Origin: Neoechinorhynchus agilis
Lineage: Eukaryota; Animalia; Acanthocephala
DNA length: 64,000 nucleotides
Direction: 5' to 3'
NCBI GenBank assembly: GCA_051530055.1
Contig: CM121343.1
Span: 7,752,152-7,816,151, forward strand
Below, piece after piece: positions 5,700 to 64,000 of the stretch. The notes below the pieces were generated by a model. It had not been told where the DNA came from. It saw only the letters and a program-made list of their open reading frames with translations, and ran no database searches. The position numbers and the translations under genes were made by a program. Position 1 is the first letter of the stretch; every line of letters starts with the position of its first letter.

Positions 5700-5995
5700 G
5701 TTCAAGGCGACGAGAGATGATGGCTGGGGTAGAGAAGGCGTAAACCGGACGGTGTCACAGTATTCCCGTGGCGAGAAGGAAAATGCCTTAGCAACATAAA
5801 ATTCGTCACTATTAAACCAGGGGAGCAGCAACCGCCGCTGAGGAACGCAAAAGGTCCAAATACAGGGACCTGAGTCGAAATCATTATTGTGCTCCCTTTG
5901 GCGTCGAGACGCTCGGGTTGTTTGGTACCGCGGCGCGAGACCTGGTCAAGCAATTGTCTAGGAAATTGAGACGAATCACTGGCGATAGAGTTTGC
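5700..5995 (+). mobile_element. CRE-clade non-LTR fragment (restriction-like endonuclease region)
   Basis: RKPDGVTVFPWREGKC...AEERKRSKYRDL...PFGVETLG. Nucleotide similarity to 42754-43212. Confidence 0.85.
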
Positions 5996-15189: not shown

Positions 15190-15790
15190 GGGACTTATAT
15201 TTGAAAGAGTTTTACAGGAGAATGACCGGTTGGGAGTCTTTCCTTGTTCTCCGGTTGTTAAGGAAAGATTGGGCTTGGGGGAGGAAAGAATTTTGGTTGA
15301 AAGTGGTAAGAGCGAGGGGGATGAAAAAGGTTGGGGTTACGGGTGTTAGATGAGGGAAGAAAATTGTGGAGGGGTTGAAGAAGACGGAGGGCGTTTTTGG
15401 AGGAAATGGAGGTGGGCGTCGAGGGGAGGGAGTGAAGTCTCGCATATTCTCGCTGATCTCTTGTGGAAGGTTTCGAGGGAATGGAGAGCATTGACGGAAA
15501 GGGCGAGGAAAGCGTATGTAAGGATAGGGAGGATGGCAGAAAGATAAAAGTGAGCAAAGTATTTAGGGGATACGCCGAGACGCCGGAGGAGTTTGAGAAG
15601 GTAAAGACGAGGGTTTGCTTTAAAGAGTGTAAATGAAATGTGGGAATCCCATTTAAGGTTTTCTTTGAAAGTCAGGCCCAGTATTCGGAAAGAAGATGAG
15701 CGTTGGACGGGGAGAGGCGCGGGGATAAGGTTGCGTTTGGAAATTTGGGGCTGTAGATGTTCCGAAGTCATTGTTCACCCAATACTCATC
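15190..15790 (-). mobile_element. CR1/L2-like LINE ORF2 C-terminus
   Basis: FRILGLTFKENLKWDSHI...KANPRLYLLKLLRRLG...FYLSAILPILTY...NTRNPNLFHPPR. Confidence 0.85.
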
Positions 15791-15849
15791 ACAAGATCTT
15801 AATAAGGAAAATTGTTCAACCCACTAAATTATTAAGCACGGGGGTTGCT

Positions 15850-27000: not shown

Positions 27001-27271
27001 TAGTGAAGAATTCGATTTAAGTCTCGGGGAGTTTTCTCAGTCTGTAAAGCAATTCAAAATGATTGACTTTAGATGCACTATTGACGGTAACCGTTCCCTC
27101 GAAAAAAAAGCGTCACTTCATCTGCTACTCGACAGTCTTAGAACAAGACTCGTTGGGTCCAAATATAATGGTGATGACAGCGTAGTCGATCAGGTGGATG
27201 ATGCAATCGAAACGGCTACAAATATTGACAATCTAAGTATGTTGTACGAAGGATGGATGGCTTGGGTATGA
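18045..27271 (+). CDS. SMG1: SMG1 PIKK-family serine/threonine kinase (nonsense-mediated decay), multi-exon with a ~4.3-kb exon
   Basis: HEAT-like N-terminus, kinase GLGDRHLNNIL...HIDFNVCF...PETVPFRLTQN, a long post-kinase insertion and the SMG1-type FATC ATNIDNLSMLYEGWMAWV*. Start codon and some small exons are uncertain. Confidence 0.93.
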
Positions 27272-27724: not shown

Positions 27725-28430
27725 AGAAATATATTTCGACTGATTGAATCAGAGTCCTTTTATCGATTCTATCTAAAATTTCATAAGAATTTGCAACAAA
27801 CACACGACATGATTGTTCTCGTTTTGACCAGGAAACCAGGGAATGTCAACCCCGTAGGTTTATCAGTCGATGGAATTTTCTATTTTCACTACAGAGAACA
27901 CTGGTCTTGTCGAACCCAGTTAAGTGTGTGGTTCTGTGCCCATGATTTAAAATCGCTGAAGTCTTATCGTGATTCGTACTTGTGTTCAAGCAGACGGGTT
28001 TCTTTGAACAGCTCATTGTTTCACCTACGTAGGCCATTTCGCAGTCGTTGCAGGGGATGCAGTAGACTACATCGGAACTATTTTTTAGTTCATATTTTCT
28101 TTTAAAGATGCCCACGATAGTCGGGGTTCTCTTGTAGGCAAACGGGGAATTTCGAATTTCCGAGGGTCCTGCGTAAAAGATTAGAGCAAAAATCATCAAT
28201 AAATCCAGATCAAATGAATGCCACGTCGCTTAGTTTTCAACGATTGGGTCGGAAATATCGCTCCTTCTTACAAACCTGCCGTATCGTCCAATCCGGGTAG
28301 TCTCTTCTTTTTAACATAATCTTAATATTCTCGATCTCACGGTTCCTCTCATGATCAATATTGCAAACCCTGATAGCTCCCCTGAATAACGACTGTGCAG
28401 TGCTTATTTTGAAAGCTTAAAGCGAGTTGG
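27725..28430 (-). mobile_element. Penelope-like element 3' fragment (thumb plus GIY-YIG) with a decayed hammerhead at its end
   Basis: VYCIPCNDCEMAYVGET...SAILNHGHRTTH. At 27726-27767 the minus strand reads gact...agtc-GAAA-UAUAU with a degenerate CUGA box. Confidence 0.8.
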
Positions 28431-28559
28431 TTTTTCATGGTGCGCTTTGCCAATAGATTCCAAGTTTCCGGTATATGGAAGCTTGACAATCTGTTCTCTT
28501 CACACAAACATCGAGGAAAGTTATCGTGTTATTTTTGTTTTCGTAGGAGGTTGACCATT

Positions 28560-29600
28560 GAATTGTCTTATCTTTATTGCCACACACTCAAAATCCGCTC
28601 AGAAACAAATCCACCCAACTCCTACACTTGCCAAGTTCTGCAAACTACATCCCCTTCAAGCTCTTTCAAACAACCATTTCTCTCCATTCTTTTCACTAAC
28701 ATAAGAGGTCTGTCACCAAAAATTGATCATCTTTCACTTTTAGCCACTACCACCAACGCAGACATTCTGGTCATTGTGGAAACATGGCTGCACTCCTTCA
28801 ATTCCGACATCGCCTTAATCCTTGTCTACACGTCTTTCCACTCTTAAATGTCTTACCCTTAACCAAGTGTTTTGAAATCGTCCCCTCAATCCCAAACAGC
28901 CCTTCCGATCAGCCACTTCTTCCTTTTCCAATCAATCATGTCTCCTCTGTCAGGAGTTTGTGTCTCGTGTTAAGAGGGAGGCTACAAGAGGTGAAATAAA
29001 AGTTACTTTAAGGAGACGTGGTCTCGGGCTAAAGGGATTTTTGGAGGGAATGCGCATAACAGTTAATGAGGGAGGAATAGTGGAGTGAATGTCGGGGAAA
29101 GGAATTGATCGATTCTAAGGATTTGGTGGCGGTTTTGTGCATCAGCGGCGGGGGCTTCCGGCATACCAGAAATAAAAATGGTGCGATTTATATCCTTGAA
29201 GGAGGAGTGCACGACACGATGGGTCGAATTCAGGGAGGCGTTCCCAACGAATCTTCGCTTGAGTTTGCAATACTGATGGAATCTACCAAAACCGTATCCT
29301 CCTTCATGGAAGCTACACTAGCCGATTTCTGTAAAACTTTAGCCAGTTTCTTAGAATTCCCTTTGGGAGTTTTTGCCTGCCTCTTTAGACCGCTAGATTT
29401 ATTCTCTTTGTGCTTTTTGATTTCGACTGACTGTTCACTTCTAAGAGCTTCCTTTTCCCACTGAATCCATTAATATATCTTAACTGTACTCATCACTTCA
29501 ATCAATGAACCCTTTAAAGCATCGGTAGCTTGTTCAAAGCACCTTTTAGTGCAGCATCAATAAGCGTAGAATACTTGGCCGATTCTCGTTTTTGCTGTTC
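28560..29600. mobile_element. CR1/L2-like LINE 5' fragment: ORF1 on minus strand, start of APE domain on plus strand
   Basis: Plus strand has ILFTNIRGLSPKIDHL...ADILVIVETWL. Minus strand has RTIFISGMPEAP...RPSLTR, typical of ORF1. Confidence 0.6.
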
Positions 29601-29699
29601 ATTGATTTGAGCAGAGAGTAGACGTTGACGTACGCTGGACACTTAGAAATTCAAACTGCGCCGTTCGCCTATATCACAAGAGAAAGCTGACTATCGCGG

Positions 29700-29830
29700 G
29701 CATATTTAAAAGAAAACCTCTACCGCATCCCCTGCAACGACTGCGAAATGGCCTACCGTCTGCTTGAACACTAGTACGAATCACGATGTGACGATACGAT
29801 TTCAGCCATTTTAAATCATACTCACCAAAC
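29700..29830 (+). mobile_element. Penelope-like GIY-YIG fragment, inverted copy of ~27950-28070
   Basis: gcatcccctgcaacgactgcgaaatggcctac...cgtctgcttgaacac..gtacgaatcacgat is shared with the minus-strand copy. Confidence 0.8.
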
Positions 29831-30049
29831 CGGAGGTTATAATCAACGAGCTACAGTACGTCGTTGACAATGGCACCTCATATGACGATTAGTCCTTGTT
29901 CTGCATCTCAAAAAATCCAATCCCGGCCTTCTTGACTAAGTCGACAGGAATTTTATTACCTAGGAGCACTGCTAGTAAAGAACAATATCGACGTAAAATA
30001 AAAATAGCAGTTTGAGGTTTTCCGATAATATCCAACATTTGCAAATCCA

Positions 30050-30215
30050 ATTCTACTGTCTTCGACAAAATCTTACCAGGATCACTCAGCTGCCGTCCTG
30101 GTGTAACGGTCGAAAGAACGGATGCAGCGCTCCTTGCCGTTGCAAAGCAAGGCTTTTGTTTTGTATGAGGAATGTTCCTGCTCTCGGATCGCCAGTGGTT
30201 CGTTTATAAGGATTT
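30050..30215 (-). mobile_element. CRE 3'-end fragment
   Basis: Colinear with 42770-42900 (ggatcactcagctgccgtc...ggatgcagcg...ctcggatcgccagtg). Confidence 0.8.
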
Positions 30216-30229
30216 TGTCAAAATTAAAA

Positions 30230-30400
30230 GGTTAGCCCCACCAGAACGGACTTTCCAACCCAACCGGATATTCTCAATCGAACGGACACATCCTCACCCG
30301 AACGAACCGTTCCCGACTGGATACCCGAACCCATATTAACGGATGAGGACCCAAAGGTACATGGGTCCTCCCAAACCTTTCTTTGTATTCTCAATAAACG
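30230..30400 (+). mobile_element. Isolated LINE 3'UTR and tail with terminal stem-loop and AATAAA
   Basis: Shares ccagaacggac and tgaggacccaaaggtacatgg with 46290-46410. Hairpin at 30345-30370, AATAAA at 30393. Confidence 0.7.
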
Positions 30401-32190
30401 TAATTCGCACTCATCAGAAGCATAAATTACAATCTTTCAGCAATAACCGCTGTTGATTTTGTTCAAATGAGGTCATCGAAATCGTGAACTTTTGGAAGCC
30501 CAACACAATTAATCAGATCAAAACGAATATTTGTTTCTCCAAGCGTTGTTGAGCTCATTCGGGTTTAGGTCGAAAGGAATGTGTATCGATCTAAACGTAC
30601 TTCTATATCTTTTTCATATACGATATCCATGACATAATTCCACAATAGCAAGGGCCTTTATCATGAATAGCTCAATTTTCAGTTTGAAAAGCTTGTTCAG
30701 TCCGCTTTACTCGCTCATTGTGTGCTGTGAAAATCAGTACTTTCCTGTCCTTATCGTGTAATAATTCATTAAATTTGAATCTCCACGAAGCACACTGCCC
30801 TCCAAGAAAGGTTTTTTTAGTCACACACAGTTAGGAGATTTGCATGAACCAGCGGGCAGCCACTTGTATTTTCTTTTTACCGTAAACTTTATAAAAATAC
30901 ATAGTTACGCAAACAAATTTCAGGAAAAAATGGTGCGCGGTGAACTTATCGTATAAACCGGCAATAATTGTCCTTCTATGAAAAATTATTGACTTGCTTG
31001 TAAACCAGCGGTTTTTAAAACACAATTTGCTCATTAACTGTTTATTTTTGCAGCGGGAAATGATATTGCTGAAGTATTTTAAAAATAGATACGAGTCTTC
31101 AAAATAAAAAGAATTTTAATTATACTCGAAGCATCAATCACTCCCCAGTTTGCCGCCGATGGAGGTCGTGCTCGTAATGCTAATGGATTTCCCTCGCCGG
31201 ACAGCCATGTTTATCCCCGTTATGAGGAAAGTCTTATTCCTATGGTTGCCGGACGTTTTTATAGTGGGACAATCAGACCCACCGATAGATCACAGGGATT
31301 AGTGTCAATGGGCCAGGCTGGATTGTCAAGTAATTTCCTAATAATGGCACCATCGATTGACGAATGATCTTTGAGTAATGATGGAATGTCCCTTCTCGTC
31401 GTGTAAAATTCATAATGATCGTTTTATTGGATCAAAAACCTCTTTTTTCTTCGACTCCGTCCATGGGAACGTTGTAGATATAATGGAAAAGTCCTAAGCA
31501 TACTTGCATTCTCTTGGAGAGCCGAGATTTAAGCAATTCAACCCTAGTCAATGATGTTAGCAAGCGCAAAGCAATCATCCAGGCGGTACGAGTGACTGGA
31601 TTGCATAAGCTATGGATTTGTTGCGCAAGAAAAGCGACTTCTTTCATCGGTTCAACAAAATTAGTTTTTAGTTCAAACACTATTTTGGAGCACGTGTCCT
31701 TTCCTTTAGAACTAAGGAAGGAAAATAGTACGTGAGACCTTGAAACAAACTAATTTCAGGATTATATGGTTTGACATCGAACTTCCCAGTACGAAGAGAG
31801 TAATTTTAAAGATACGATTTAGCCATCTTGAGGACTTTCAAATTTTTTTTGTGCTTTGGTTCCCTACTCTCATTCAAATCAAAATCATTTGGTTTTTATA
31901 AGTTTTCAAACTTTTGTTTTTAATTGAGCGTAATGTCCAAGCAAAAATCGGTGTGTGGTCCGCCGATGCGGTCACCATTCGCCCGATCAGCTCCGGATAA
32001 CCGAAAAGCATCCGGATTGCTTGGTTACATCTAATCAAATTTAGAAACTTGGTTCATATCCACGTCACTTAGTTACGCTCATCAGTGCGATGATTATGTT
32101 TGTAAATGTGCAAATAGTACTACTTGTTTGGCTACTACTACTACCAGCGAATACTGATTTGAACCCGTTCACATTTTACACAATCGATCG

Positions 32191-33829: not shown

Positions 33830-34470
33830 CTTCGACAATACAAAAAGAAATTAATTCGAATATCGAATCGTTATCCACGAAGGATAACTCCCATCTTAAA
33901 TATCCTGATTTTCCCGGTTTACAGAAAGTCCCTCAAAATACTTGTTGCCCACAAAACCTTCCTGCTCTTGCTAAATTTTACAACATGTTTAAATCACAAA
34001 TTCGTCGCCTTTAATAAACGTTTAGTGGAGTAGCCTCTAAAATTTGCGCAGTTGATTTTCCCCCGCTCGCCGAATTCATTTATAAGATTTTTATCAAACA
34101 ATCGAAACGCCTCTCAACCCTAGCACCAAATTTTTTTAACACATTTTATTCTCATTTTCACACGAACACAATACTCGCAATCCCAATTCGTTTAATTTTC
34201 CTATACCGCCGTTCCTTTTTCAATACTGCCCGATATTCTCGGCTATCATAACCCGAAATGAACCTGAGGAAAGATGCAACCTCACAAACTCTCCTTCAAA
34301 CAATAACCACCAATTCCAACTCGACCAAATGTTCAAACCCGCCCGGCGGACTCGTTATCCACCCCAAAATCAACGACCGCATTCATTGATCCTATCGGAA
34401 CTCGAGTGTTTATGAGGAACCCAAGTTACGTGGTTCCTATTCTTTGTGCTTTAATTAACTAATAAAGACG
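33830..34470 (+). mobile_element. CR1/L2-like LINE 3' end
   Basis: HNTRNPNSF-type ORF2 C-terminus shared with 45270-45415. 3' hairpin at 34415-34438, followed by AATAAA. Confidence 0.75.
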
Positions 34471-35437
34471 AGTAGCGTAATGTTGCCATAGTCTCCCCTC
34501 CTTTATATTCTCCAAAAGAGGGCACACTTTGTTAATCCACTTCCTAGCTTCTGCTCTAAAGGACCTTCGTATTTGCACCTTCTGTGCAGTCGAAATGTAA
34601 GTGGACATTAAAAAATCTGTTTTTCATATGAAGTTGTGAATCACATTACAACTCGGGCTTATATTGCTGCACGCAGTAAAATTTAAAAATGTTTTTTGAT
34701 TTGATGCCCGAGATTGAAATTTTCATGACGGAAAAATCAAAACATCTTAGCGAGTTTAACGGCCTCCTTTCCCCTTTAAAAGTTATTTACATAAGGGCGG
34801 GCCACGTGAGACAGCTTAACTGGCCGAATGTTGAGCACTGCTGAACTGTACTAAACTTGACTACTCTAAGAAGCATGCAAATAAATTCGCGATATCTCCA
34901 AGCATTTTCTAAAAGTGCAATACAACGTCGAGTTTATGTAATCCCACTTGCAGTTTACATCACTAATTTTCTATAAAATCCAAAGTGCCATCACTCCGAG
35001 AAGAGCGTCATTCCGTTGACTACAGACATCAATTGAAGACCATTTAATTTATAAAAATGGTATTTTAAAGATCGTTTTTGTTTCAATATTAATTTCCTAG
35101 GATTTAAATTGCAAGGAGACTTTAATCGAGAAAAAGAAGGTGAAGACAACCGTTAATTCATAATGATTTCCTTTACGGTGGTAGAATTTTCACATTGATT
35201 TCGACTAAGTTACTTTTAGTGGTTGCATGGCATTTTTCCATGACTACAAAAGCATATTGTACCGCATCCATGTTCGTATATTCCATGGTGCATGGACTAT
35301 CTTGAGGAAGTCTATGTTTGCAAGAACTGCAATCGATCGATCAGCATGTAAAAGTAAATGCACGGAGATGGTAGATTTAGCGGTAAAAAAGTATAACAAA
35401 TTTAGGCTGTGAGTGCAGCGCGCAGGGAATAAATCCT

Positions 35438-42699: not shown

Positions 42700-44290
42700 G
42701 TTCAAATTAAAGTTCTTTTGATTGAAAAGACAACATATCCCGAGGAGCAAAAATCATTTACACCACAGTTTTGGATCACTCAGCTGCCGTCTTGATGTAA
42801 CGATCGAAAGGACGGATGCAGCGTTCCCTCGTTGCACTGCCAGAATTATGTTTTGTAGGAGGAATTCTCCTGATCTCGGATCGCCAGTGATTCGTCTGAG
42901 TCTCTTGGACAATTGCTTGACCAGGTCCTGTGCCTCGGTACCAAACAACCCGAGCGTCTTCAGGTCCCTGTATTTGGTCCTTTTGCGGTCCTCAGCGGCG
43001 GTTGCTGCTCCTCCTGGTTTAATAGTGACGAATTTTATGTTGCTGACTGCGAGCGTGTCCACGAACGTGGCGTCCCACAGAAGGCACTTTCCTCGCCACG
43101 GGAATACTGTGACACCATCCGGTCTACGGCCATCGAGTCGGCAAATATTGTTCGGCTCTAGGATGTTGGGCGCATTAACAGTATTCAGGGCACGACTAAG
43201 AATTGCGTTCATTTCGGCGTGTCGTGAGTACCTCCCGCCTGATTGCCGACAGACGAGACCATGGCGTCCCTACGGATCCACAGTCGCTCCGCAGCGGCAG
43301 CGATAGGATGTGCACATCGATACCTAAAGTCTCAGGGACACTGCAATCCTTACTGTCTCGTTCGAGAGAAGGGTACCCACAGAAGCGATTGGGATAGCAT
43401 TGAACCAAGCACCCGATTCCCTTGTAGAGACTGTCGCTAATCGATTTCGGTTCACTAGGTCACAAGAATCTGAAATTAAAGAGTTATGAATTCTCGCTAC
43501 CAGGGGTGAGTCCCAAACTGATTGTTTGCAACCATTGACGGGGACCTGCTCGCTGTCTGAATCTCCACACCAAAGATTAAGCGAATCTACGATATCTTCA
43601 TCCAAAGTATAATTCTCGCGAAGAACGGATTGAACTATTTTGCGGCTTGCTTCATACAATCCCAAGTAAGGTGACAGAGAAATATCGGCAGCTTTTCGGA
43701 TATCCAAACTGCCGGACGACACAGACAAGGACGCTTGACGCCAGGCCTCGTCCGACAGTTGAGTATTTAAAATTTTCTCGATAGAGGCTTTCACCGTCTC
43801 GTCTAATTTTTGCCAGCTTATCCTTATGTCTAAGAAAGGTGCTGTGGGCAGTTTATACAACGATTTTGGAACGAAGAGGGTTTTCTTGATCAGAAAAAGA
43901 GCCTCGTGTGAAGATAATTCATCATCTCGTTCGCACAGCAAAGAAAGTTACGGGTGAAGATTGGCAATGTCTGCTTCAACATTAGAACCAAAAAAATGCA
44001 GCTTCCTAGAAGACGCAATCGATCTAGAGTGATCAATTCTATCCCCGGGCCAGGTTCTGAAAATCTTTAACGACAGTTTGCCTGGACGCCTCATCTTCAG
44101 CCTTAATCACTAAAATCTCGCATTTCACAACAATCAATGCCAATTATCGCCGTCTTCTTTCACGAACGTCTCCAAATCGTGCAGTAAAACAGAGGGGTAA
44201 CCTCCGAGCGTGGCATCGTCCGGGTACCAGCCGCTAAAGCTGGCCTGTAGAGAGTGCGCGACAGGATTGATTGTGAGTGAGAAGGCTAGC
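42700..44290 (-). mobile_element. CRE-clade non-LTR element, 5'-truncated in RT, decayed
   Basis: WYPDDATLGG (RT), HEALFLIK, AWFNAIP, RRPDGVTVFPW, VQRGNAASVL. Confidence 0.9.
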
Positions 44291-44949
44291 CCAAGGAACA
44301 AAATTATCAGCCGTGAAAAAAGCTCACTTGAACGAAGAATAAATGTAACCGGGTAATTAGACTTAAAAAGATAAAATAATTCCATTTTATTTAGTTATCA
44401 TCGCAAATAGATAAAATTACATATTAAATCGAGGTTGCGTCAATAACCAAAGCAGACATTTTAAACTAAAACCAAACTGACCATCGCAAGTCTTAGTCCA
44501 AGATTTTCGTTGATAGAAACAAAAAATATACAATAAAAAGGATAAAAAGTATGACGATCGGAAAAGTAAAACTATACGTCACGTATTTCATGAACACGTC
44601 ACCGCGGAGAAACCACGTGTTCCCTTTTCGGTCCTCCCGTTACACTTACGTAGGGTTTCTGTTGTATGTATCAAATTTGCAAAGAATGGCCAAATTTCAG
44701 AAATACATTTTGATTAGATTGAAAACTCGGAAATGCGCAAGTGCATTAACCTGAAGATCGTAATATTGAAAGGAAATTAGTCTGGATGCTAAATTCGGAA
44801 ATTTGTGGGAAAAGATTGCACTTCATCAATGAAAAATCGTTCACTTTCTACAAAACTTCGGAACACTGAGTATTCAGAGAAGTGAGGTGCTATCTCGAAT
44901 ACTGGCAAAAAGGTGATAAAAATATGCTGTTAATTAATTCAACCTTTGA

Positions 44950-46440
44950 CAACATCATTTCGAGTTGATCCTATCACTACCATAACCCCACGTCCTACCC
45001 CGATCTTCCAGGGCATTTAATTTCAATCAAAGTTGAAACAGGACTCACACATCACTCTATCCCTCAAGCGCAACACTTTTAAAATTTATCTCCTTAAACG
45101 CCTCCGACATTTAGGAATCCCTTCACCCGATCTCTACAAATTTTGCTTCTGATTTATCGTTCCATCCCCAATCATAAATCTAGCGTCTTGAAATTCTTCA
45201 TAAAAGAGCATCTAAAATTTGCACAACCGACTTTTCTCCTCTCACCGAATGCCTTGATACTATTTTCATAAAACAATCAAAACGCCTCTCAACCCTACGA
45301 CCACAATTTCTTCCACATATCACCCCTTTTTACACGAGCACAACACTCGCAATCCCAATTCGTTTCATCCTCCTTCGACCTCGAAACTCCCTATGCCTCC
45401 GTTCCTTTTTCCATAACAACAACATTTCTTTGAACTTTTCTCTCACTTGAGAGGTCGTTCTTTTCAGCATTGTCGTTTTTCGTCTTTGTTCTCCTTTCCC
45501 AGCGTCTTGAAATCTCCGCTCACACTATCCTTCCACCTCTTCTTGGGCCTCGATCTTCTCCTTTTCCCCTCGAGCTCGATTCTCGTGTCACCTGCAGGTT
45601 CCATCGCATCCGCCTCTTAGCGATTGCCTCCTCGATCGGCTCGACAGCAAACAGCTTTCGCACCTCCTAATTGGGCACTCGATCCTTGCGTGTCAATCCT
45701 GCGGACCATCTCAGCATCCGCATTTCGTTGATGGCTAATCGTTGAACGTCTTCCTTCTTCGTAGCCCACTTCTCTGCTCCATGGAGCATGGCGGTTCCCA
45801 CTACTGCCTTGTACACCCGCCCTTTGAGCTTGTTCGAAAGACGCTTATCGCAGGGGATGCCTGTTGTCATCCTCCAGTTATTCCACACGCATTGAACTCT
45901 TTGTCCGATCTCACATTGCATGTTCAACAGGCTGCCCAAATATTTGAAGATCTTTTCGATCTGAGTTCCTTGCCTGTTCACCCTCAATCCGTTGCTTTCT
46001 AATCGCTGTCGCCAACTCTCCAGCAAATTCCTGAGCGTGTCCACATCCCTAGCTGTGAGCACCAATTCGTCCGCGAATAGTATCATCCATTTCTCTTTCC
46101 GCATTTCCTAGGATGTCCATCACGATCGTGAACAAGAATGGGCTCAGGGCCGAACCCTATTGCAAACTCACGGACTCGGAAATAGTCGGTGGTTCTGCTG
46201 TGGCATCGAACGTAGGTGTAGCACTCTCGATCCGTTCCTTTTCCCATACTGCCCAATATTCTCGGATATCAGAACTTGAAATGAACTTCCCACCAGAACG
46301 GACATTCAAACCCGCCCGGACTCGTAATCCACTGCAAAATAAACAGCTACATTCATTTTTCCTCTAAGAACTCGAGTTTTCATGAGGACCCAAAGGTACA
46401 TGGCTCCTATTCCTTGTTCAATAATAAAACGTATTATTAT
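44950..46440 (+). mobile_element. CR1/L2-like LINE 3' end split by an RTE insertion
   Basis: YLLKRLRHLG...HNTRNPNSF up to 45415, resuming at 46231 and ending in the family hairpin (46384-46408). Confidence 0.8.
45416..46230 (-). mobile_element. 5'-truncated RTE-clade LINE with 18-bp target-site duplication
   Basis: GSALSPFLF, ILFADELVL, FKYLGS, KGRVYKAVV...EMRMLRW. TSD tccgttcctttt(t/c)ccata at 45398-45415 and 46231-46248. Confidence 0.9.
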
Positions 46441-47177
46441 CCTTGGAAGGTCCGAGACATCCAATTGATGGAATAATTACAATAATATGACAATCACATA
46501 AGTTTTGTTAAAAGTTGTGCCGTTACAGAACGCTGCTGCCCATAGGGCAGAACGATAGAAGACTTCGAAAATTCTGACTTAAAATTGGCGTTTTAAGTCA
46601 GTTCAAAACAGAAAAATTTATTCGGAAATCTTTATTTCCATAGGGCGCAACTTGTATGGGCGTGATTGTATTAATTCTGGTGCGTCAAAAGAACTCAAAT
46701 CAATATTGTAACTCGGAGGACACGATTAGAATCCGATTACATGGCCACCAGGAAGTACTTATTTGGATGTCGTCGTTTCTAAGCTGCCAATCTCTTATTG
46801 GTTATTGCAGCGACAAAAGATCAACCACCATAGGAACCACAGGGAAAGTATTCGCTTTCATCCGAGGCTGCATGATGATACATCCATAGCTAATGGACTT
46901 TTAATGGAGCATTTGAAAACGCGGTCAAGCAGTTTGTTATATTCGTTTTAGTTGCCAATATTGACCGTGTTACTTTGGGTGAGCTAAAATTATTGGATTC
47001 TTTCGTACTTATAAGAATTACCACGACACAGATGCTAATTGCACAAGTGATCATTTTATCGTATTAACATTTGAAGAAATTCAATTTTTAATTGTCTACT
47101 ATGTTCGTATCTTACCGTGAGTTAACGTAATCGCTTTTCCTCCTGTATTTTCGTTTGAACGTGTACATATTTGGAAG

Positions 47178-51899: not shown

Positions 51900-52430
51900 C
51901 ACGCTTTACTAAATGTTAAGATCGACAAAACCGCAAAAACAGTCAATGCAGGTTAGATCAGCTTTAAAATTAGATCTAGAAAAGTTAATTTGATCTGAAA
52001 TTTATTGACGTTTTGATATCTTTAATCAAGGTTATTGATCTCAAAATTGAACAACGAATAACTCAAGAACGGTGGCAGCTATCGACAATATGAAAACAGG
52101 TTTGTAATCAGCGCGTCAAGACAAACTATTTGATCATAATCCATAAACGACAGCTATATCATTAATGTCAGAAAACCGCATTGTTATATTTCGTCGCAAG
52201 TCATAACAGTAAAAGATCACTAAATTTGCAAGATATACTAAAATTGGATAATACCATTGAAATCAGCGCATCAGGTATGCTCAAAATATTTTATAAAATC
52301 TAACCCGCGTCTTCGCACTACGGATTAAATTCAGGTGTCTTTTAAGAACATCAACCTTACAAACCAAATGTTAAGATTGACAAAAACATTAAACGCAGGT
52401 GAAATAAGCTATAAATGCAGATCTAGAAAA
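51900..52430 (+). repeat. Divergent edge monomer(s) of the 454-bp satellite (same subtype as 4266-5695)
   Basis: Carries the ataaacgacagctatat segment found in the 4.3-5.7 kb copies but absent from the main array. Junction near 52430 with a short agatctagaaaa duplication. Confidence 0.8.
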
Positions 52431-55400
52431 AGTAGATCTAGAAAAGTTAATTTAATCTTAAAATGTAACAACAAATAACGCAAGAACCATGATAGCTATC
52501 GCAAATCCGAAAACAGATTTGGAATCAGCGCGTTAAGATGTACTAAATTAGCTGATTCCGTACACTACAGCTGTAATATTCGCATCGGAAATCGCATTAT
52601 CATATTTTGCCAATATTCACAGGAGGGAAACATCACTAAATTTGCAACAATCATTAAAATCAGATAATACCATTGAAATCAGCGCATCAGATATGCTCAA
52701 AATGTTTTTTCATTTCGTAACAAGTTTCGAGCACCACAGATTTAATTCAGGTGTCTTTTATCAACTTCAATCCTTAAACAAAGTTTCAAAACTTAACAAG
52801 TTACATCAAACCGTAACTGCAGGTGAATTCAGCGTCCAAGGTAGATCTAGAAAAGTTAATTTGATCTTAAATTGATTGATGTTTTAATATCAATAATCAA
52901 GGTAGTTGGTCCCAAAATGTAACAACAAATAACTCAAGAACCATGATAGCTATCGCAAATGCGAAAACAGATTTGGAATCAGCGCGTTAAGATGTACTAA
53001 ATTAGCTGACTCCGTACACTACAGCTGCAATATTCGCATCGGAAATCGCATTGTCATATTTTGCCAATATTCATAAGAGTGAAAGATCACTAAGTTTGCC
53101 AGACTCGTTAAAATCAGATAACACCATTGAAATCAGCGCATTAGATATGCTCAAAATGTTTTTTCATTTCGTAACAACTTTCGAGCACCACAGATTTAAT
53201 TCAGGTGTCTTTTATCAACTTCAATCCCAAAACTAAGTATCAAAATTTTACAAGCAACATCAAACCATTATTGCAGGTGAATTCAGCGTCAAAAGTAGAT
53301 CTAGAAAAGTTAATTTGATCTTAAATTGATTGATGTTTTAATGTCAATAATCAATGTAGTTGGTCTCAAAATGTAACAACAAATAACTCAAGATCCATGA
53401 TAGCTATCGAAAATCCGAAAACAGATTTGGAATCAGCGCGTTAAGATGTACTAAATTAGCTGATTCCCTGCACTACAACCGTAATATTCGCATCGGAAAT
53501 CGCATTATCATATTTTGCCAATATTCACAAGATGGAAAAATAACTAAATTTTCAAGAATCATTAAAATCAGATAACACCATTGAAATCAGCGCATTAGAT
53601 ATGCTCAAAATGTTTTACTATTTCGTAACAACTTTCGAGCAGAACAGATTTAACTGAGGTGTCTTTTATGAACCTCAATCCTAAAACTAAGTGTCAAAAT
53701 TTAACAAGCAACATCAAACCGTTATTGCAGGTTAATTCAGCGTCAAAAGTAGATCTAGAAAAGTTAATTTTATCTTAAATTGATTGATGTTTTAATATCA
53801 ATAATCAAGGTAGTTGGTCTCAAAATGTAACAACAAATAACTCAAGAACCATGATAGCTATCGCAAATCCGAAAACAGATTTGGAATCAGCGCGTTAAGA
53901 TGTACTAAACTAGCAGATTCCATACACTACAGCCGTAATATTCGCATCGGAAATCGCATTATCATATTTTGCCAATATTATCAAGAGGGAAAAATCACTA
54001 AATTTGCATGAATCATTAAAATCAGATAACACCATTGAAATCAGCGCATTAGATATGCTCAAAATGTTTTTGTATTTCGTAACAACTTTCGAGCAGAACA
54101 GATTAAACTGAGGTGTCTTTTATGAACTTATATCCTAAAACTAAGTGTCGAAATTTAACAAGCAACATCAAACCGCTATTGCAAGTGAATTCAGCGCCAA
54201 AAGTAGATCTAGAAAAGTTAATTTGATCTTAAATTGATTGATGTTTTAATATCAATAATCAAGGTAGTTGGTCTCAAAATGTAACAATAAATCACTCAAG
54301 AACCATGATAGCTATCGAGAATCCGAAAACAGATTTGGAATCAGCGCGTTAAGATGTACTAAATTAGCTGATAGCGTACACTACAGCCTTAATATTCGCA
54401 TTGGAAATCGCATTATCATATTTTGCCAATATTCACATGAGGGAAAAATAACTAAATTTGCATGAATCATTAAAATCAGATAACACCATTAAAATCAGCG
54501 ATTTAGATATGCTCAAAATGTTTTACTATTTCGTAACTACTTTCGAGCACAACAGATTTAACTGAGGTGTCTTTTATGAACTTCAATCCTAAAACTAAGT
54601 GTCGAAATTTAACAAGTAACATCAAACCGTTATTGCAGGTGAATTCAGCGTCAAAAGTAGATCTAGAAAAGTTAATTTGATCTTAAATTGATTGATGTTT
54701 TAATATCAATAATCAATGTAGTTGGTCTCAAAATGTAACAATAAATAACTCAAGAACCATGATAGCTATCGAGAATCCGAAAACAGATATGGAATCAGCG
54801 CTTTAAGGTGTACTTCATCAGCTGATTCCGTACACTACAGCCGTAATATTCGCATCGGAAATCGCATTATCATATTTTGCCAATATTCACATGAGGGAAA
54901 AATAACTAAATTTGCATGAATCATTAAAATCAGATAACACCATTAAAATCAGCGATTTAGATATGCTCAAAATGTTTTACTATTTCGTAACTACTTTCGA
55001 GCACAACAGATTAAACTTAGGTGTCTTTTATGAACTTCAATCCTAAAACTAAGTGTCGAAATTTAACAAGCAACATCAAACCGCTATTGCAAGTGAATTC
55101 AGCGTCAAAAGTAGATCTAGAAAAGTTAATTTGATCTTAAATTGATTGACGTTTTAATATCAATAATCAAGGTAGTTGTTCTCAAAATGTAACAATAAAT
55201 AACTAAAGAACCATGATAGCTATCGAGAATCCGAAAACAGATTTGGAATCAGCGCGTTAAGATGTACTTCATTAGCTGATTCCTTACACTACAGCCGTAA
55301 TATTCGCATTGGAAATCGCATTATCATATTTTGCCAAAATTCACAAGAGGGAAAAATCACTAAATTTGCATGAATCATTAAAATCAGATAACACCATGAA

Positions 55401-58400
55401 AATCAGCGATTTTGATATGCTCAAAATGTTTTACTATTTCGTAACTACTTTCGAGCACAACAGATTTAACTTAGGTGTCTTTTATGAACTTCAATCCTAA
55501 AACTAAGTGTCGAAATTTAACAAGCAACATCAAACCGTTATTGCAGGTGAATTCAGCGTCAAAAGTAGATCTAGAATAGTTAATTTGATCTTAAATTGAT
55601 TGATGTTTTAATATCAATAATCAAGGTAGCTGGTCTCAAAATGTAACAACAAATGACTCAAGAACCATGATAGCTATCGAAAATCCGAAAACAGATTTTG
55701 AATCAGCGCTTTAAGATGTACTAAATTAGCTGATTTCGTACACTACAGCCGTAATATTCGCATCGAAAATCGCATTATCATATTTTGCCAATATTCACAA
55801 GAAGGAAACATCACTAAATTTGCAAGAATCATTTAAATTAGATAACACCATTGAAATCAGCGAATTAGATATCCTCAAAATGTTTTTGTATTTCGTAACA
55901 ACTTTCGAGCATAACAGATTTAACTGAGGTGTCTTTTATGAACTTCAATCCTAAAACTAAGTGTCAAAATTTAACAAGCAACATCAAACAGTTATAGCAG
56001 GTGAATTCAGCGTCAAAAGTAGATCTAGAAAAGTTAATTTGATCTTAAATTGATTGATGTTTTAATATCAATAATCAAGGTAGCTGGTCTCAAAATGTAA
56101 CAACAAATAACTCAAGAACCATGATAGCTATCGAGAATCCGAAAACAGATTTGGAATCAGCGCGTTAAGATGTATTAAAATCAGATAACACCATTGAAAT
56201 CAGCGCATTAGATATGTTCGAAATGTTTTTGTATTTCGTAACAACTTTCGAGCAGAACAGATTTAACTGAGGTGTCCTTTATGAACTTCAATCCTAAAAC
56301 TAAGTGTCGAAATTTAACAAGCAACATCAAACCGTTATTGCAGGTGAATTCAGCGTCAAAAGTAGATCTAGATAAGTTAATTTGATCTTAAATTGATTGA
56401 TGTTTTAATATCAATAATCAAGGTAGTTAGTCTCAAAATGTAACAACAAATAACTCAAGATCCATGATAGCTATCGCAAATCCGAAAACAGATTTGGAAT
56501 CAGCGCGTTAAGATATACTTCATTAGCTGACTCCGTACACTACAGCCGTAATATTCGCATTGGAAATCGCATTATCATATTTTGCCAATATTCACAAGAG
56601 GGAAAAATCACTAAATTTGCATGAATCATTAAAATCAGATAACACCATGAAAATCAGCGATTTAGATATGCTCAAAATGTTTTACTATTTCGTAACTACT
56701 TTCGAGCACAACAGATTTAACTAAGGGGCATTTTATGAACTTCAATCCTAAAACTAAGTGTCGAAATTTAACAAGCAACATCAAACCGTTATTTCAGGTG
56801 AATTCAGCTTCAAAAGTAGATTTAGAAAAGTTAATTATATCTTAAATTGATTGATTTTTTAATATCAATAATCAAGGTAGTTGGTCTCAAAATGTAACAA
56901 TAAATAACTCAAGAACCATGAAAGCTATCGAGAATCCGAAAACAGATTTGGAATCAGCGCGTTAAGATGTACTTAATTAGCTGATTCCGTACACTACAGC
57001 CGTAATATTCGCATTGGAAATCGCATTATCATATTTTGCCAATATTCACAAGAGGGAAAAATCACTAAATTTGCATGAATCATTTTAATCAGATAACACC
57101 ATTGAAATCAGCGATTTAGATATGCTCAAAATGTTTTACTATTTCGTAACTACTTTCGAGCACAACAGATTTAACTAAGGGGCATTTTATGAACTTCAAT
57201 CCAAAAACTAAGTGTCGAAATTTAACAAGCAACATCAAACCGTTATTGCAGGTGAATTCAGCGTCAAAAGTAGATCTAGAATAGTTAATTTGATCTTAAA
57301 TTGATTGATGTTTTAATATCAATAATCAAGGTAGTTGTTCTCAAAATGTAACAATAAATAACTCAAGAACCATGATAGCTATCGAGAATCCGAAAACAGA
57401 TTTGGAATCAGCGCGTTAAGATGTACTTCATTAGCTGATTCCGTACACTACAGCCGTAATATTCGCATTGGAAATCGCATTATCATATTTTGCAAATATT
57501 CACAAGAGGGAAAAATCACTAAATTTTCATGAATCATTAAAATGAGATAACACCATTAAAATCAGCGATTACGATATGCTCAAAATGTTTTACTATTTCG
57601 TAACTACTTTAAAGCACAACAGATTTAACTGAGGTGTCTTTTATGAACTCCAATCCTAAAACTAAGTGTCGAAATTTAACAAGCAACATCAAACCGTTAT
57701 TGCAGGTGAATTCAGCGTCAAAAGTAGATCTAGAAAAGTTCATTTGATCTTAAATTGATTGATGTTTTAATATCAATAATCAAGGTAGTTGGTCTAAAAA
57801 TGTAACAACAAATAACTCAAGAACCATGATAGCTATCAAGAATCCGAAAACAGATTTGGAATCAGCGCGTTAAGATGTACTAAATTAGCTGATTCCGTAC
57901 ACTACAGCCGTAATATTCGCATCGGAAATCGCATTATCATATTTTGCCAATATTCACAAGAGGGAAAATCACTAAATTTGCAAGAATCATTAAAATCAGA
58001 TAACACCATTGAAATCAGCGCATTAGATATGCTCCAAATGTTTTACTATTTCGTAACTACTTTCAAGCACAACAGATTTAACTTAGCTGTCTTTTATGAA
58101 CTTCAATCCAAAAACTAAGTGTCAAAATTTAACAAGCAACATCAAACCGTTATTGCAGGTGAATTCAGCGTCAAAAGTAGATCTAGAAAAGTTAATTATA
58201 TCTTAAATTGATTGATGTTTTCATATCAATAATCAAGGTAGTTGGTCTCAAAATGTTACAACAAATGACTCAAGAACCATGACAGCTATCGAGAATCCGA
58301 AAACAGATTTGGAATCAGCGCGTTAAGATGTACTAAATCAGCTGATTCCGTACACTACAGCCGTAATATTCGCATCGGAAATCGCATTATCATATTTTAC

Positions 58401-61400
58401 CAATATTCACAAGAACGAAAAATCACTAAATTTGCAAGAATCATTAAATACAGATAACACCATTGAAATCAGCGCATTAGATATGCTCAAAATGTTTTAC
58501 TATTTTGTAACCACTTTCGAGCACAAATGATTTAACTTAGGTGTCTTTTATGAACTCCAATCCTAAAACTAAGTGTCGAAATTGAACAAGCAACATCAAA
58601 CCGTTATTGCAGGTGAATTCAGCGTCAAAAGTAGATCTAGAAAAGTTAATTTTATCTTAAATTTATTGATGTTTTAATATCAATAATCAAGGTAGTTGGT
58701 CTCAAAATGTAACAATAAATAACTCAAGATCCATGATAGCTATCGCGTATCCGAAAACAGATTTCGAATCAGCACGTTAAGATGTACTTCATTAGCTGAT
58801 TCCGTACACTACAGCCGTAATATTCGCATCGGAAATCGCATTATCATATTTTGCCAATATTCACAAGAGGGAAAAATCACTAAATTTGCAAGAATCATTA
58901 AAATCAGATAACACCATTGAAATCAGCGAATTAGATATCCTCAAAATGTTTTTGTATTTCGTAACAACTTTCGAGCATAACAGATTTAACTGAGGTGTCT
59001 TTTATGAACTTCAATCCTAAAACTAAGTGTCAAAATTTAACAAGCAACATCAAACCGTTATTGCAGGTGAATTCAGCGTCAAAAGTAGATCTAGAAAAGT
59101 TAATTTGATCTTAAATTGATTGATGTTTTAATATCAATAATCAAGGTAGCTGGTCTCAAAATGTAACAACAAATAACTCAAGAACCATGATAGCTATCGA
59201 GAATCCGAAAACAGATTTGGAATCAGCGCGTTAAGATGTATTAAAATCAGATAACACCATTGAAATCAGCGCATTAGATATGTTCAAAATGTTTTTGTAT
59301 TTCGTAACAACTTTCGAGCAGAACAGATTTAACTGAGGTGTCTTTTATGAACTTCAATCCTAAAACTAAGTGTCGAAATTTAACAAGCAACATCAAACCG
59401 TTATTGCAGGTGAATTCAGCGTCAAAAGTAGATCTAGAAAAGTTCATTTGATCTTAAATTGATTGATGTTTTAATATCAATAATCAAGGTAGTTGGTCTC
59501 GAAATGTAACAACAAATAACTCAAGAACCATGAGAGCTATCGAAAATCCGAAAACAGATTTGTAATCAGCGCGCTAAGATGTACTAAATTAGCTGATTCC
59601 GTAAACTACAGCCGTAATATTCGCTTCGGAAATCGCATTATCATATTTTGCCAATATTCACAAGAGGGAAAAATCACAAAATTTGCAAGAATCATTAAAA
59701 TCAGATAACACCATTGAAATCAGCGAATTAGATATGCTCAAAATGTTTTTGTATTTCGTAACAACTTTCGAGCACCACAGATTTAACTGAGGTGCCTTTT
59801 ATGAACTTCAATCCTAAAACTAAGTGTCAAAATTTAACAAGCAACATCAAACCGTTATTGCACGTGAATTAAGCGTCAAAAGTAGATCTAGAAAAGTTAA
59901 TTTGATCTAAAATTGATTGATGTTTTAATATAAATAATCAAGGTAGTTGGTCTCAAAATGTAACAACAAATAACTCAAGAACGATGAGAGCTATCGAAAA
60001 TCCGAAAACAGATTTGTAATCAGCGCGTTAAGATGTACTAAATTAGCTGATTCCGTACACTAATGCCGTAATATTCGCATCGGAAATCGCATTATCATAT
60101 TTTGCCAATATTCACAAGAGGGAAAAATCACTAAATTTGCAAGAATCATTAAAAGCAGATAACACTATTAAAATCAGCGCATTAGATATGCTCAAAATGT
60201 TTTACCATTTCGTAACTACTTACGAGCACAACAGATTTAACTTAGGTGTCTTTTATGAACCTCAATCCTAAAACTAAGTGTCAAAATTTAACAAGCAACA
60301 TCAAACCGTTATTGCAGGTGAATTCAGCGTCAAAAGTAGATATAGAAAAGTTAATTTTATCTTGGAATTGATTGATGTTTTAATATCAATAATCAAGGTA
60401 GTTGGTCTCAAAATGTAACAACAACAAATCAAGATCCATGACAGCCATCGAGAATCCGAAAACAGATTTGGAATCAGCGCGTTAAGATGTACTAAATTAG
60501 CTGATTCCGTACACTACAACCGTAATATTCGCATCGGAAATCGCATTATCATATTTTGCCAATATTCACAAGAGGGAAAAATCACTAAATTTGCAAGAAT
60601 CATTAAAATCAGATAACACCATTGAAATCAGCGCATTAGATATGCTCAAAATGTTTTACTATTTCGTAACTACTTTCGAGCACAACAGATTTTACTTAGC
60701 TGTCTTTTATGAACTTCAATCCTAAAACTAAGTGTCAAAATTTAACAAGCAACATCAAACCGTTATTGCAGGTGAATTCAGCGTCAAAAGTAGATCTAGA
60801 AAAGTTAATTATATCTTAAATTGATTGATTTTTTAATATCAATAATCAAGGTAGTTGGTTTCAAAATGTAACAACAAATAACTCAAGAACCATGATAGCT
60901 ATCGAGAATCCAAAAACAGATTTGGAATCAGCGCGTTAAGATGTACTAAATTAGCTGATTCCGTACACTACAGCCGTAATATTCGCATCGGAAATCGCAT
61001 TATCATATTTTGCCAATATTCACAAGAGGAAAAAATCACTAAATTTGCAAGAATCATTAAAATCAGATAACACCATTGAAATCAGCGCATTAGATATGCT
61101 CAAAATGTTTTACTATTTCGTAACTACTTTCGAGCACAACAGATTTAACTTAGGTGTCTTTTATGAACTTCAATCCTAAAACTAAGTGTCGAAATTTAAC
61201 AAGTAACATCAAACCGTTATTGCAGGTGAATTCAGCGTCAAAAGTAGATCTAGAAAAGTTAATTTGATCTTAAATTGATTGATGTTTTAATATCAATAAT
61301 CAAGGTAGTTGGTCTCAAAATGTAACAATAAATAACTCAAGAACCATGATAGCTATCGAGAATCCGAAAACAGATTTGGAATCAGCGCGTTAAGATGTAC

Positions 61401-62191
61401 TTAATTAGCTGATTCCGTACACTACAGCCGTAATATTCGCATCGGAAATCGCATTATCATATTTTGCCAATATTCACAAGAGGGAAAAATCACTAAATTT
61501 GAATGAATCATTTAAATTAGATAACACCATTGAAATCAGCTCATTAGATATGCTCAAAATGTTTTTGTATTTAGTAACAACTTTCGAGCAGAACAGATTT
61601 AACTGAGGTGTCTTTTATGAACTTCAATCCTAAAACTAAGTGTCAAAATTTAACACGCAACATCAAATCGTTATTGCAGGTGAATTCAGCGCCAAAAGCA
61701 GGTCTAGAAAAGTTAATTTTATCTTAAATTGATTGATGTTTTAATATCAATAATCAAGGTAGTTGGTCTCAAAATGTAACAACAAATAACTCAAGAACCA
61801 TGATAGCTATCGAGAATCCGAAAACAGATTTGGAATCAGCGCTGTAAGATGTACTTCATTAGCTTATTCCGTACACTACAGCCGTAATATTCGCATCGGA
61901 AATTGCATTATCATATTTTGCCAATATTCACAAGAGGTAAAAATCGCTAAATTTGCAAGAATCATTAAAATAAGATAACACCATTGAAATCAGCGCATTA
62001 GATATGCTCAAATTGTTTTTGTATTTCGTAACAACTTTCGAGCAGAACAGATTTAACTGAGGTGTCTTTTATGAACTTCAATCCTAAAACTAAGTGTCAA
62101 AATTTAACAAGCAACATCAAACCGTTATTGCAAGTGAATTCAGCGTCAAAAGTAGATCTAGAAAAGTTATATTTATCTTAAATTGATTGAT
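52430..62191 (+). repeat. 454-bp AT-rich satellite array, about 22 monomers
   Basis: ggaatcagcg anchor at 52521, 52975, 53429...61832 with 454-bp spacing, except two 343-bp monomers and one 453-bp monomer. Confidence 0.97.
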
Positions 62192-64000
62192 GGTTCGGGT
62201 GGTAATATCTGGTCGGAGGGATTCCTATTAGGATGGGAATATCCAGTCGAGGACGGTTCGTTCGGGTGGTAATATCTGGTCGGAGGGATTCCTATTAGGA
62301 TGGGAACATCCAGTCGAGGACGGTTCGTTCGGGTGGTAATATCTGGTCGGAGGGATTCCTATTAGGATGGGAATATCCAGTCGAGGACGGTTCGTTCGGG
62401 TGGTAATATCTGGTCGGAGGGATTCCTATTAGGATGGGAATATCCAGTCGAGGACGGTTCGTTCGGGTGGTAATATCTGGTCGGAGGGATTCCTATTAGG
62501 ATGGGAACATCCAGTCGAGGACGGTTCGTTCGGGTGGTAATATCTGGTCGGAGGGATTCCTATTAGGATGGGAATATCCAGTCGAGGACGGTTCGTTCGG
62601 GTGGTAATATCTGGTCGGAGGGATTCCTATTAGGATGGGAACATCCAGTCGAGGACGGTTCGTTCGGGTGGTAATATCTGGTCGGAGGGATTCCTATTAG
62701 GATGGGAATATCCAGTCGAGGACGGTTCGTTCGGGTGGTAATATCTGGTCGGAGGGATTCCTATTAGGATGGGAATATCCAGTCGAGGACGGTTCGTTCG
62801 GGTGGTAATATCTGGTCGGAGGGATTCCTATTAGGATGGGAACATCCAGTCGAGGACGGTTCGTTCGGGTGGTAATATCTGGTCGGAGGGATTCCTATTA
62901 GGATGGGAACTATCCAGTCGAGGACGGTTCGTTCGGGTGGTAATATCTGGTCGGAGGGATTCCTATTAGGATGGGAATATCCAGTCGAGGACGGTTCGTT
63001 CGGGTGGTAATATCTGGTCGGAGGGATTCCTATTAGGATGGGAACATCCAGTCGAGGACGGTTCGTTCGGGTGGTAATATCTGGTCGGAGGGATTCCTAT
63101 TAGGATGGGAACTATCCAGTCGAGGACGGTTCGTTCGGGTGGTAATATCTGGTCGGAGGGATTCCTATTAGGATGGGAATATCCAGTCGAGGACGGTTCG
63201 TTCGGGTGGTAATATCTGGTCGGAGGGATTCCTATTAGGATGGGAATATCCAGTCGAGGACGGTTCGTTCGGGTGGTAATATCTGGTCGGAGGGATTCCT
63301 ATTAGGATGGGAACTATCCAGTCGAGGACGGTTCGTTCGGGTGGTAATATCTGGTCGGAGGGTTCCTATTAGGATGGGAACATCCAGTCGAGGACGGTTC
63401 GTTCGGGTGGTAATATCTGGTCGGAGGGATTCCTATTAGGATGGGAATATCCAGTCGAGGACGGTTCGTTCGGGTGGTAATATCTGTCGGAGGGATTCCT
63501 ATTAGGATGGGAATATCCAGTCGAGGACGGTTCGTTCGGGTGGTAATATCTGGTCGGAGGGATTCCTATTAGGATGGGAATATCCAGTCGAGGACGGTTC
63601 GTTCGGGTGGTAATATCTGGTCGGAGGGATTCCTATTAGGATGGGAACATCCAGTCGAGGACGGTTCGTTCGGGTGGTAATATCTGGTCGGAGGGATTCC
63701 TATTAGGATGGGAATATCCAGTCGAGGACGGTTCGTTCGGGTGGTAATATCTGGTCGGAGGGATTCCTATTAGGATGGGAATATCCAGTCGAGGACGGTT
63801 CGTTCGGGTGGTAATATCTGGTCGGAGGGCTGTCTATTCGGATGGGAACTATCAAGTTGGGGACGGTTCGTTCGGGTGGTAATATCTGGTCGGAGGGATT
63901 CCTATTAGGATGGGAATATCCAGTCGAGGACGGTTCGTTCGGGTGGTAATATCTGGTCGGAGGGATTCCTATTAGGATGGGAACTATCCAGTCGAGGACG
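62192..64000 (+). repeat. 67-bp G-rich tandem array, about 27 near-identical units, running off the window end
   Basis: Unit cgggtggtaatatctggtcggagggattcctattaggatgggaatatccagtcgaggacggttcgtt, with variants gaatatcc/gaacatcc/gaactatcc and one divergent unit near 63830. Confidence 0.97.

Follow-up and report, generated by a model that had tools for sequence, protein, structure and literature searches.

What DNA stands at the ends of acanthocephalan chromosomes? Telomeric repeats in Acanthocephala are unknown; fluorescence in situ hybridization and Southern hybridization with known probes failed in Pomphorhynchus, and the authors proposed an unknown motif or another maintenance mechanism for acanthocephalan telomeres. 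Since 2009 no known telomere probe has labelled acanthocephalan chromosomes, and the reviews and karyotype papers of 2023-2025 still call the motif unknown and ask for genome sequencing. We analysed the last 64,000 nucleotides (nt) of chromosome scaffold CM121343.1 of Neoechinorhynchus agilis (assembly GCA_051530055.1, positions 7,752,152 to 7,816,151 of the forward strand; hereafter the window), which close with a G-rich tandem array at 62193-64000 on the + strand, made of 27 units that measure 67/68 bp. No assembled block of N. agilis chromosome 3 lies farther out than this array. We think it probable that it is a young satellite derived from a retroposon and that it forms the distal block of this chromosome end. 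Sequence comparison makes its origin from a transposable element (TE) well supported, and the apparent donor is the internal minisatellite of a dispersed family, named X here, that resembles a short interspersed nuclear element (SINE). The specific 67-mer turns a phylum-wide open question into one that can be checked directly.

A Homogeneous G-Rich Array at the End of the Scaffold

Tandem Repeats Finder reported a single array at 62193-64000, with a period of 67, 26.9 copies, 97% matches and a score of 3459, and splitting at a fixed anchor gave 27 units. The homogeneous 67-bp G-rich array described in the initial annotation is therefore real, and so is the direction claimed for it, since G/(G+C) is 0.70 on the + strand and the G-rich strand runs 5' to 3' toward the window end. 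The array has a GC content of 51%; the adjoining 454-bp satellite has 32% and the remainder of the window 40%. On direct reading of the sequence, each unit consists of two diverged sub-repeats of approximately 33 bp apiece.

Nearly all the variation in the array is confined to one site, at which 15 units read AATATCC and seven AACATCC (each 67 bp long), and four read AACTATCC (68 bp). The two shorter forms are single-base deletions of AACTATCC at adjacent positions. Besides this site, there are 1-nt deletions in two units and one divergent unit. The latter, a lone 68-bp unit at 63802-63869 (+ strand), is 90% identical to the consensus and retains GTCCCC and GATAGTTCCC (in reverse-complement orientation); both states are also found in a unit of the X minisatellite on chromosome 1 (L007_U2, described below). 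The divergent unit had initially been likened to a degenerate repeat at about 30258-30295, a resemblance that did not hold up: compared with 30258-30294 it is 75% identical and the consensus unit 76%, so it is no closer than any typical unit. Identity between variants was highest at a lag of three units (0.58 vs 0.37, p = 0.015), a signal of higher-order structure that was not significant after correction for nine lags.

A hairpin had also been proposed for each unit. The palindrome on which this was based, TCCTATTAGGA, is present in the array unit, but the predicted DNA fold showed no clear extra stability over shuffled sequences (z = -1.6), and we retain the palindrome and nothing beyond it. 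The array contains no long open reading frame (ORF), stop codons returning in each unit on the G-rich strand, and the public gene-position index holds no record for an array ORF of 35 amino acids (aa). An exact DNA scan with the array unit gave no match in the JGI metagenomes or in bacterial and archaeal genomes, which argues against contamination, and four 15-mers taken from the unit were absent from the literature in a full-text search.

The position of the array was fixed by a locus (L001, CM121343.1 7763227-7789422, not reversed) that agrees with window 11076-37271 in every base. Position x of the window thus corresponds to x + 7,752,151 in the record, and window position 64000 is base 7,816,151 of 7,816,151, the final base. 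The array is therefore terminal in the assembly and not interstitial, the latter being the position that the initial annotation had considered incompatible with a chromosome-end repeat. The 64 kb contain no N characters. The assembly, which also holds 99 unplaced scaffolds, has N. agilis chromosome records (CM121341-CM121343) of 19.4, 16.4, and 7.8 Mb, which makes six chromosome ends; the observation concerns one of the six, with 1.8 kb of array assembled. According to the assembly paper, the genome comprises 46.2 Mb, with 94% of the sequence in three scaffolds, and was obtained from a hybrid nanopore and Illumina assembly (MaSuRCA/Flye; 4.2 Gb of nanopore data from a pool of 50 worms) followed by Hi-C scaffolding with instaGRAAL and manual curation. 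Telomeres are never mentioned in that paper.

Immediately proximal to the array, repeat and alignment analysis placed an AT-rich satellite with a 454-bp unit at 51908-62192 (+ strand, approximately 10 kb in total). Its main block (52456-62192) holds about 21 units that are 93-94% alike, and its most divergent copies lie at 51908-52455. The abrupt fusion of satellite and array noted initially was seen again here: the join is sharp, falls at 62192/62193 in the middle of a satellite unit, and reads '...cttaaattgattgatg' followed by 'gttcgggtgg...' where the satellite would be expected to continue with 'ttttaatatc'. Two deletion variants of the satellite unit, each of 343 bp, lie at 55824-56167 and 58890-59233; their spacing of 3066 bp points to a higher-order duplication of about 3.07 kb within the satellite. 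An older block of the approximately 454-bp satellite is located 47 kb proximally, at 4268-5695, inverted relative to the terminal block (3.1 units, 79% alike); its closest counterparts (80-82%) are the copies at 51908-52430, the most proximal ones in that block.

Repeat X and Its Homology to the Array Unit

Outside the array, the unit has a sole match in the remaining 62 kb. The reverse complement of the unit matches 30295-30323 at 27 of 29 bases (BLAST E = 3e-5), and a gapped local alignment widens the match to approximately 100 columns, equivalent to 1.4-1.5 units, with a score of 31, where shuffled sequences reached at most 19. The reverse-complement match placed initially at about 30297-30323 is thus significant. 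By sequence comparison, it belongs to a 5'-truncated copy of X at 30236-30402 (+ strand), in which approximately 1.4 C-rich units (30238-30323, the reverse complement of the array) are followed by the X 3' hairpin (gaggaccca...tgggtcctc) and then by AATAAA.

The initial annotation had ascribed this match to the 3' untranslated region (UTR) of a long interspersed nuclear element (LINE), an ascription that the surroundings do not support. The coding remnant to the left of it, at 29.6-29.79 kb, is a deleted Penelope-like fragment with a GIY-YIG domain whose homology ends at 29787. Between this piece and the match lies an unrelated minus-strand LINE fragment (30079-30203, 85% identical to 42773-42895), and full-length copies of X share no upstream ORF. 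The 3' region of a second, minus-strand Penelope-like copy, compared with the 30.3-kb tail, scored 21 against a null mean of about 21, which is not significant. We have consequently set aside a LINE or Penelope 3'UTR as the carrier of the match. The two degenerate Penelope-like fragments, at 27846-28600 (-) and 29600-29790 (+), stand head to head; the minus copy is the better preserved, and the plus copy carries deletions of 26 bp and 32 bp. A fragment of a LINE with an AP-endonuclease-like domain lies on the + strand at approximately 28.6-28.85 kb.

An nhmmer profile of X with 538 positions was built from four long copies and gave 14 matches, representing about 11 copies, in 218 kb sampled across all three chromosomes. 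At this density, about one copy per 15-20 kb, a 46-Mb genome would probably hold thousands of copies, provided that the sample is typical. The 3' end common to the copies is made up, in order, of a hairpin (9-bp stem), TTCTTTGT, AATAAA, and a tail resembling (TTA)n. Truncation at the 5' end is seen in several copies, and an identical 5' start in three or four. Full-length copies contain no ORF and have nothing in common upstream of approximately 33.93 kb. From these sequence features X looks like a non-coding, SINE-like, non-autonomous retroposon of approximately 540 bp.

Two full-length copies are present in the window. One, of approximately 540-570 bp and non-coding, occupies 33911-34481 (+ strand). 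The other is split by a LINE insertion into a 5' part at 45101-45413 (+) and a 3' part at 46231-46442 (+), which has the hairpin and AATAAA and no significant array-like motif. The inserted piece at 45414-46230 (- strand) is a 5'-truncated, RTE-like LINE fragment with the reverse transcriptase (RT) motifs GSALSPFLF and FADE and a 3' end of (TTG)n. A target-site duplication of 17 bp, CCGTTCCTTTT(T)C(C)CATA, borders it on both sides, and the empty site is kept in the X copy at 34.2 kb. The RTE piece is thus an insertion into X and not part of it, so the 30.3-kb tail does not belong to a minus-strand LINE, and we discarded the tail as a minus-strand RTE 5' leader or a template-switch chimera. One 11-mer in common with 45.1 kb was judged to be due to chance, about two such matches being expected. 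A further internal fragment of X was detected as a weak match at 6000-6131 on the - strand (nhmmer E = 9e-6).

No Rfam family was found across the window at gathering scores or, at E <= 10, in 29500-30800, ARAGORN gave no match for a tRNA origin of X, and the predicted folds were unexceptional (z = -1.2 and -2.0); a hammerhead ribozyme, a small RNA and a tRNA were therefore rejected as origins of X. On chromosome 2 (L003), two X copies at 15627-15823 (+) and 16253-16645 (-) form an inverted pair about 430 bp apart whose 3' flanks are nearly identical, which suggests a local inverted duplication.

One subfamily of X carries a C-rich internal minisatellite of 0.8-2.5 units just upstream of the hairpin. 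The longest example lies in an interstitial copy on chromosome 1 at approximately 14.35 Mb (L007, 6585-6754), which has 2.5 units and is 83.6% identical to the array over 116 bp (BLAST E = 1e-26). Its middle unit (U2), 68 nt long, agrees with the 68-bp array variant in 59 of 67 positions (88%), including GGATAGTTCCC. The 30.3-kb copy has the same layout minus an internal deletion, which leaves 1.4 units, and a copy on chromosome 2 (L004) has approximately 0.8 units, with a score of 25 against a shuffle maximum of 19-22. None of the sampled copies exceeds 2.5 units, and no other 67-bp array was found in the approximately 216 kb sampled outside the terminal one. The dispersed units are 76-91% identical to the array (9-24% different), whereas the array units are nearly identical to one another.

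In X, the minisatellite is followed by approximately 100-150 nt of 3' sequence comprising the hairpin, TTCTTTGT, and AATAAA. The reverse complement of this hairpin/AATAAA tail is absent between the 454-bp satellite and the array; on the distal side the array meets the end of the assembly. Since the proximal junction lacks the X 3' hairpin, the array is not a copy of X inserted in place.

Origin of the Array

The simplest reading of these sequence comparisons is that a short variable-number repeat within X was recently amplified into the array. Recent birth of a satellite from a TE, one of the two proposals made in the initial annotation, agrees with the data because the array is homologous to a repeat of a dispersed, apparently mobile element and is far more uniform than the dispersed copies of that repeat. 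In such a course of events a minisatellite of two to three units would be amplified through slippage and unequal exchange. Gene conversion or unequal crossing-over could then maintain the uniformity of the array and leave the three single-site variants, while the sharp junction may reflect the copying of a pre-existing array onto the end of the satellite by recombination or break repair, rather than retrotransposition. As to function, the array would most likely be a part of the terminal or subterminal GC-rich heterochromatin; a true capping role is a separate and less likely claim.

Several points weigh against this account. We infer the direction of descent; conversely, an older terminal repeat could have supplied X with one of its units. 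A significant match to the array was obtained with three of the eight X copies tested (30.3 kb, L004, and L007), and the 34-kb copy and the two L003 copies gave none. The case for calling X a retroposon is incomplete: it draws on the pattern of 5' truncation and the shared 3' end, and neither target-site duplications of its own nor a partner LINE were found among the sampled copies. Nanopore consensus error, instead of real polymorphism, might account for part of the variant pattern in the array, although the 67-type and 68-type forms are both present in the chromosome-1 copy of X too. Finally, the terminal position is a statement at the level of a hybrid, Hi-C-scaffolded assembly, and contigs often end in tandem repeats.

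Satellites born from TEs have precedents. The PisTR-A satellite of pea is said to come from the hypervariable 3' region of Ogre retrotransposons, and the DINE-TR1 arrays of the Drosophila virilis group reportedly represent satellites that arose from tandem repeats internal to a TE. As in these cases, the array unit of N. agilis is homologous to a short tandem repeat in a dispersed element, the copies of this element vary in repeat number (0.8-2.5 units), and the long uniform array lacks the rest of X on its visible side. It differs from them in that the donor is short, non-coding, SINE-like, and acanthocephalan, and in that the array lies at the very end of a chromosome scaffold instead of in pericentric heterochromatin. 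The array would be of a kind already known, namely a TE-derived satellite and possibly a satellite-type chromosome end.

A Candidate for Acanthocephalan Chromosome-End DNA

Beyond being a young satellite, the array might be the actual capping repeat of N. agilis, that is, a satellite-type telomere that works without telomerase, points outward at all six ends, and is kept by recombination or break-induced replication between ends. On present evidence we regard this as possible but unlikely. In its favour, a chromosome-scale scaffold ends with the array, whose G-rich strand runs 5' to 3' outward, the sharp join to the subterminal satellite looks like an end healed by array copying, and none of ten canonical short telomere motifs, searched on both strands of the 64-kb window, forms a run of at least three tandem copies. 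The cytogenetics of the phylum point the same way. Besides the failure of every known probe to hybridize in Pomphorhynchus, chromomycin (CMA3) staining of three Acanthocephalus species revealed that every chromosome end carries GC-rich heterochromatin, for which 'a novel GC-rich sequence' was proposed, and certain species-specific satellites, ALc98 and AAc72 among them, map to terminal regions in Acanthocephalus; the 51% GC of the array stands against a background of 32-40%. The array fits this picture of acanthocephalan ends because it is G-rich, relatively GC-rich, and located at the last base of the scaffold, and it is a concrete, testable candidate for acanthocephalan chromosome-end DNA. 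Against a capping role, one of six ends was seen and 1.8 kb assembled, an outward orientation has a 50% chance of occurring, and assemblies commonly end in satellites that lie proximal to the real telomere. The assembly paper contains no telomere analysis, and the cytogenetic data come from other genera.

A repeat made by telomerase can be dismissed. Telomerase-type short repeats measure approximately 5-30 nt and derive from one RNA template, and the array is unlike them, with a unit of 67/68 nt, two sub-repeats of about 33 nt, and three interspersed variants; the unit length in particular rules against a telomerase product.

Satellite-type ends occur elsewhere, with terminal repeats of 340-350 bp in Chironomus and 820 bp in Anopheles. 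In the telomerase-less nematodes of the genus Meloidogyne, the element 'Mg-Tel' is G-rich, directional, and located at scaffold ends (PMC10630426). The N. agilis array shares with these systems a complex, non-hexamer repeat as the last assembled sequence, a strand that is G-rich and directional, and a host lineage that shows no canonical motif. It differs from them in being known from one end, from 1.8 kb, and from assembly sequence alone, and its unit is much shorter than those of the two dipterans.

On a broader scale, the array might be the DNA that replaces TTAGGG-type telomeres in Acanthocephala, or at least in Neoechinorhynchus, lying outward on the six ends and growing independently of telomerase, whether through recombination among the ends or through reverse transcription templated by X RNA. 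We put this forward tentatively and think it rather doubtful. In the second of these routes the G-rich 3' end would anneal to the C-rich minisatellite of an abundant X RNA and so prime reverse transcription, in an Athena-like manner with an internal template. Athena and Coprina are endonuclease-deficient Penelope-like elements of bdelloid rotifers and others (PMC8557442). Their hosts include members of the same larger group, Syndermata, and X RNA would hold the G-rich terminal repeat in reverse complement, which in principle would allow this RNA to anneal to a 3' overhang of the G-rich strand. The differences are considerable: the C-rich repeat of X is internal, approximately 100 nt from the 3' end, and not terminal; no hammerhead ribozyme was found in the Rfam searches mentioned above; X encodes no RT; and the Penelope-like fragments of the window, which have a GIY-YIG nuclease domain, bear no relation to X. 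Were the array present at all ends, it would add a new case of telomerase-independent ends among animals, with a retroposon minisatellite as the evolutionary source. If it marks only this end, it would be a clean, datable example of the birth of a satellite from a mobile element.

An assembly artefact or a misplaced sequence, in which the join of satellite and array is chimeric or the terminal contig was wrongly placed or oriented, so that the repeat is truly internal or unplaced, appears improbable to us. The hybrid assembly from 4.2 Gb of nanopore data of a 50-worm pool, the scaffolding with instaGRAAL, and the curation by hand leave room for such an error, and the single-base indel variants look like nanopore consensus noise. 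However, the last 64 kb contain no N, and the sequence is laid out regularly, as is typical of subtelomeres, passing from genes to transposon-rich DNA, to the 10-kb satellite, and to the array. The unit also has independent homologues elsewhere in the genome, so it is not foreign DNA, in keeping with the lack of exact matches in the microbial and metagenome scan.

Drosophila HeT-A, TART, and TAHRE and Bombyx SART and TRAS are telomeric retrotransposons, and the orientation of the array would fit elements with their 3' end toward the centromere. It is very improbable, however, that the array is the expanded internal repeat of one copy of X or of a partner LINE that is attached at the chromosome end as HeT-A/TART are, with its remainder beyond the assembled end: the C-rich sense strand of X would indeed give a G-rich + strand if its 3' end were proximal, but the 100-150 nt of X 3' sequence are absent where the satellite directly adjoins the array, the sampled X copies hold at most 2.5 units, and the array, built from 67-bp units and not from whole elements, has neither a long ORF nor coding sequence.

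Other Features of the Window

A PIKK gene (PI3_PI4_kinase + FATC; ACOME3_010340, 1922 aa) is located at 18045-27271, 37 kb from the chromosome end. Within it, an ORF of 1423 aa at 21-25 kb encodes a PI3/PI4-kinase with a FATC tail and is 100% identical to N. agilis ACOME3_010340. Two ORFs of 351 aa and 480 aa just upstream are annotated as separate genes and have no Pfam match; they may be missing N-terminal exons of the PIKK gene.

A LINE at 42760-44300 (- strand), with fragments at 30079-30203 and 5739-5986, has the RT motif YPDD and the C-terminal motifs CxxC...H...C, RH, and PDG...D. From these motifs, its C-terminal domain resembles a restriction-enzyme-like nuclease. Relatives of this element are widespread in data from invertebrates and metagenomes; eight of them carry an annotation as N. 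agilis genes, and some of these seem to be fused to host genes. A Gypsy ORF of 402 aa gave no record in the public gene-position index. Two 143-bp inverted repeats at 7743-7883 and 9523-9665 are 94% alike and enclose approximately 1.9 kb with an ORF of 157 aa, an arrangement that may represent a DNA transposon.

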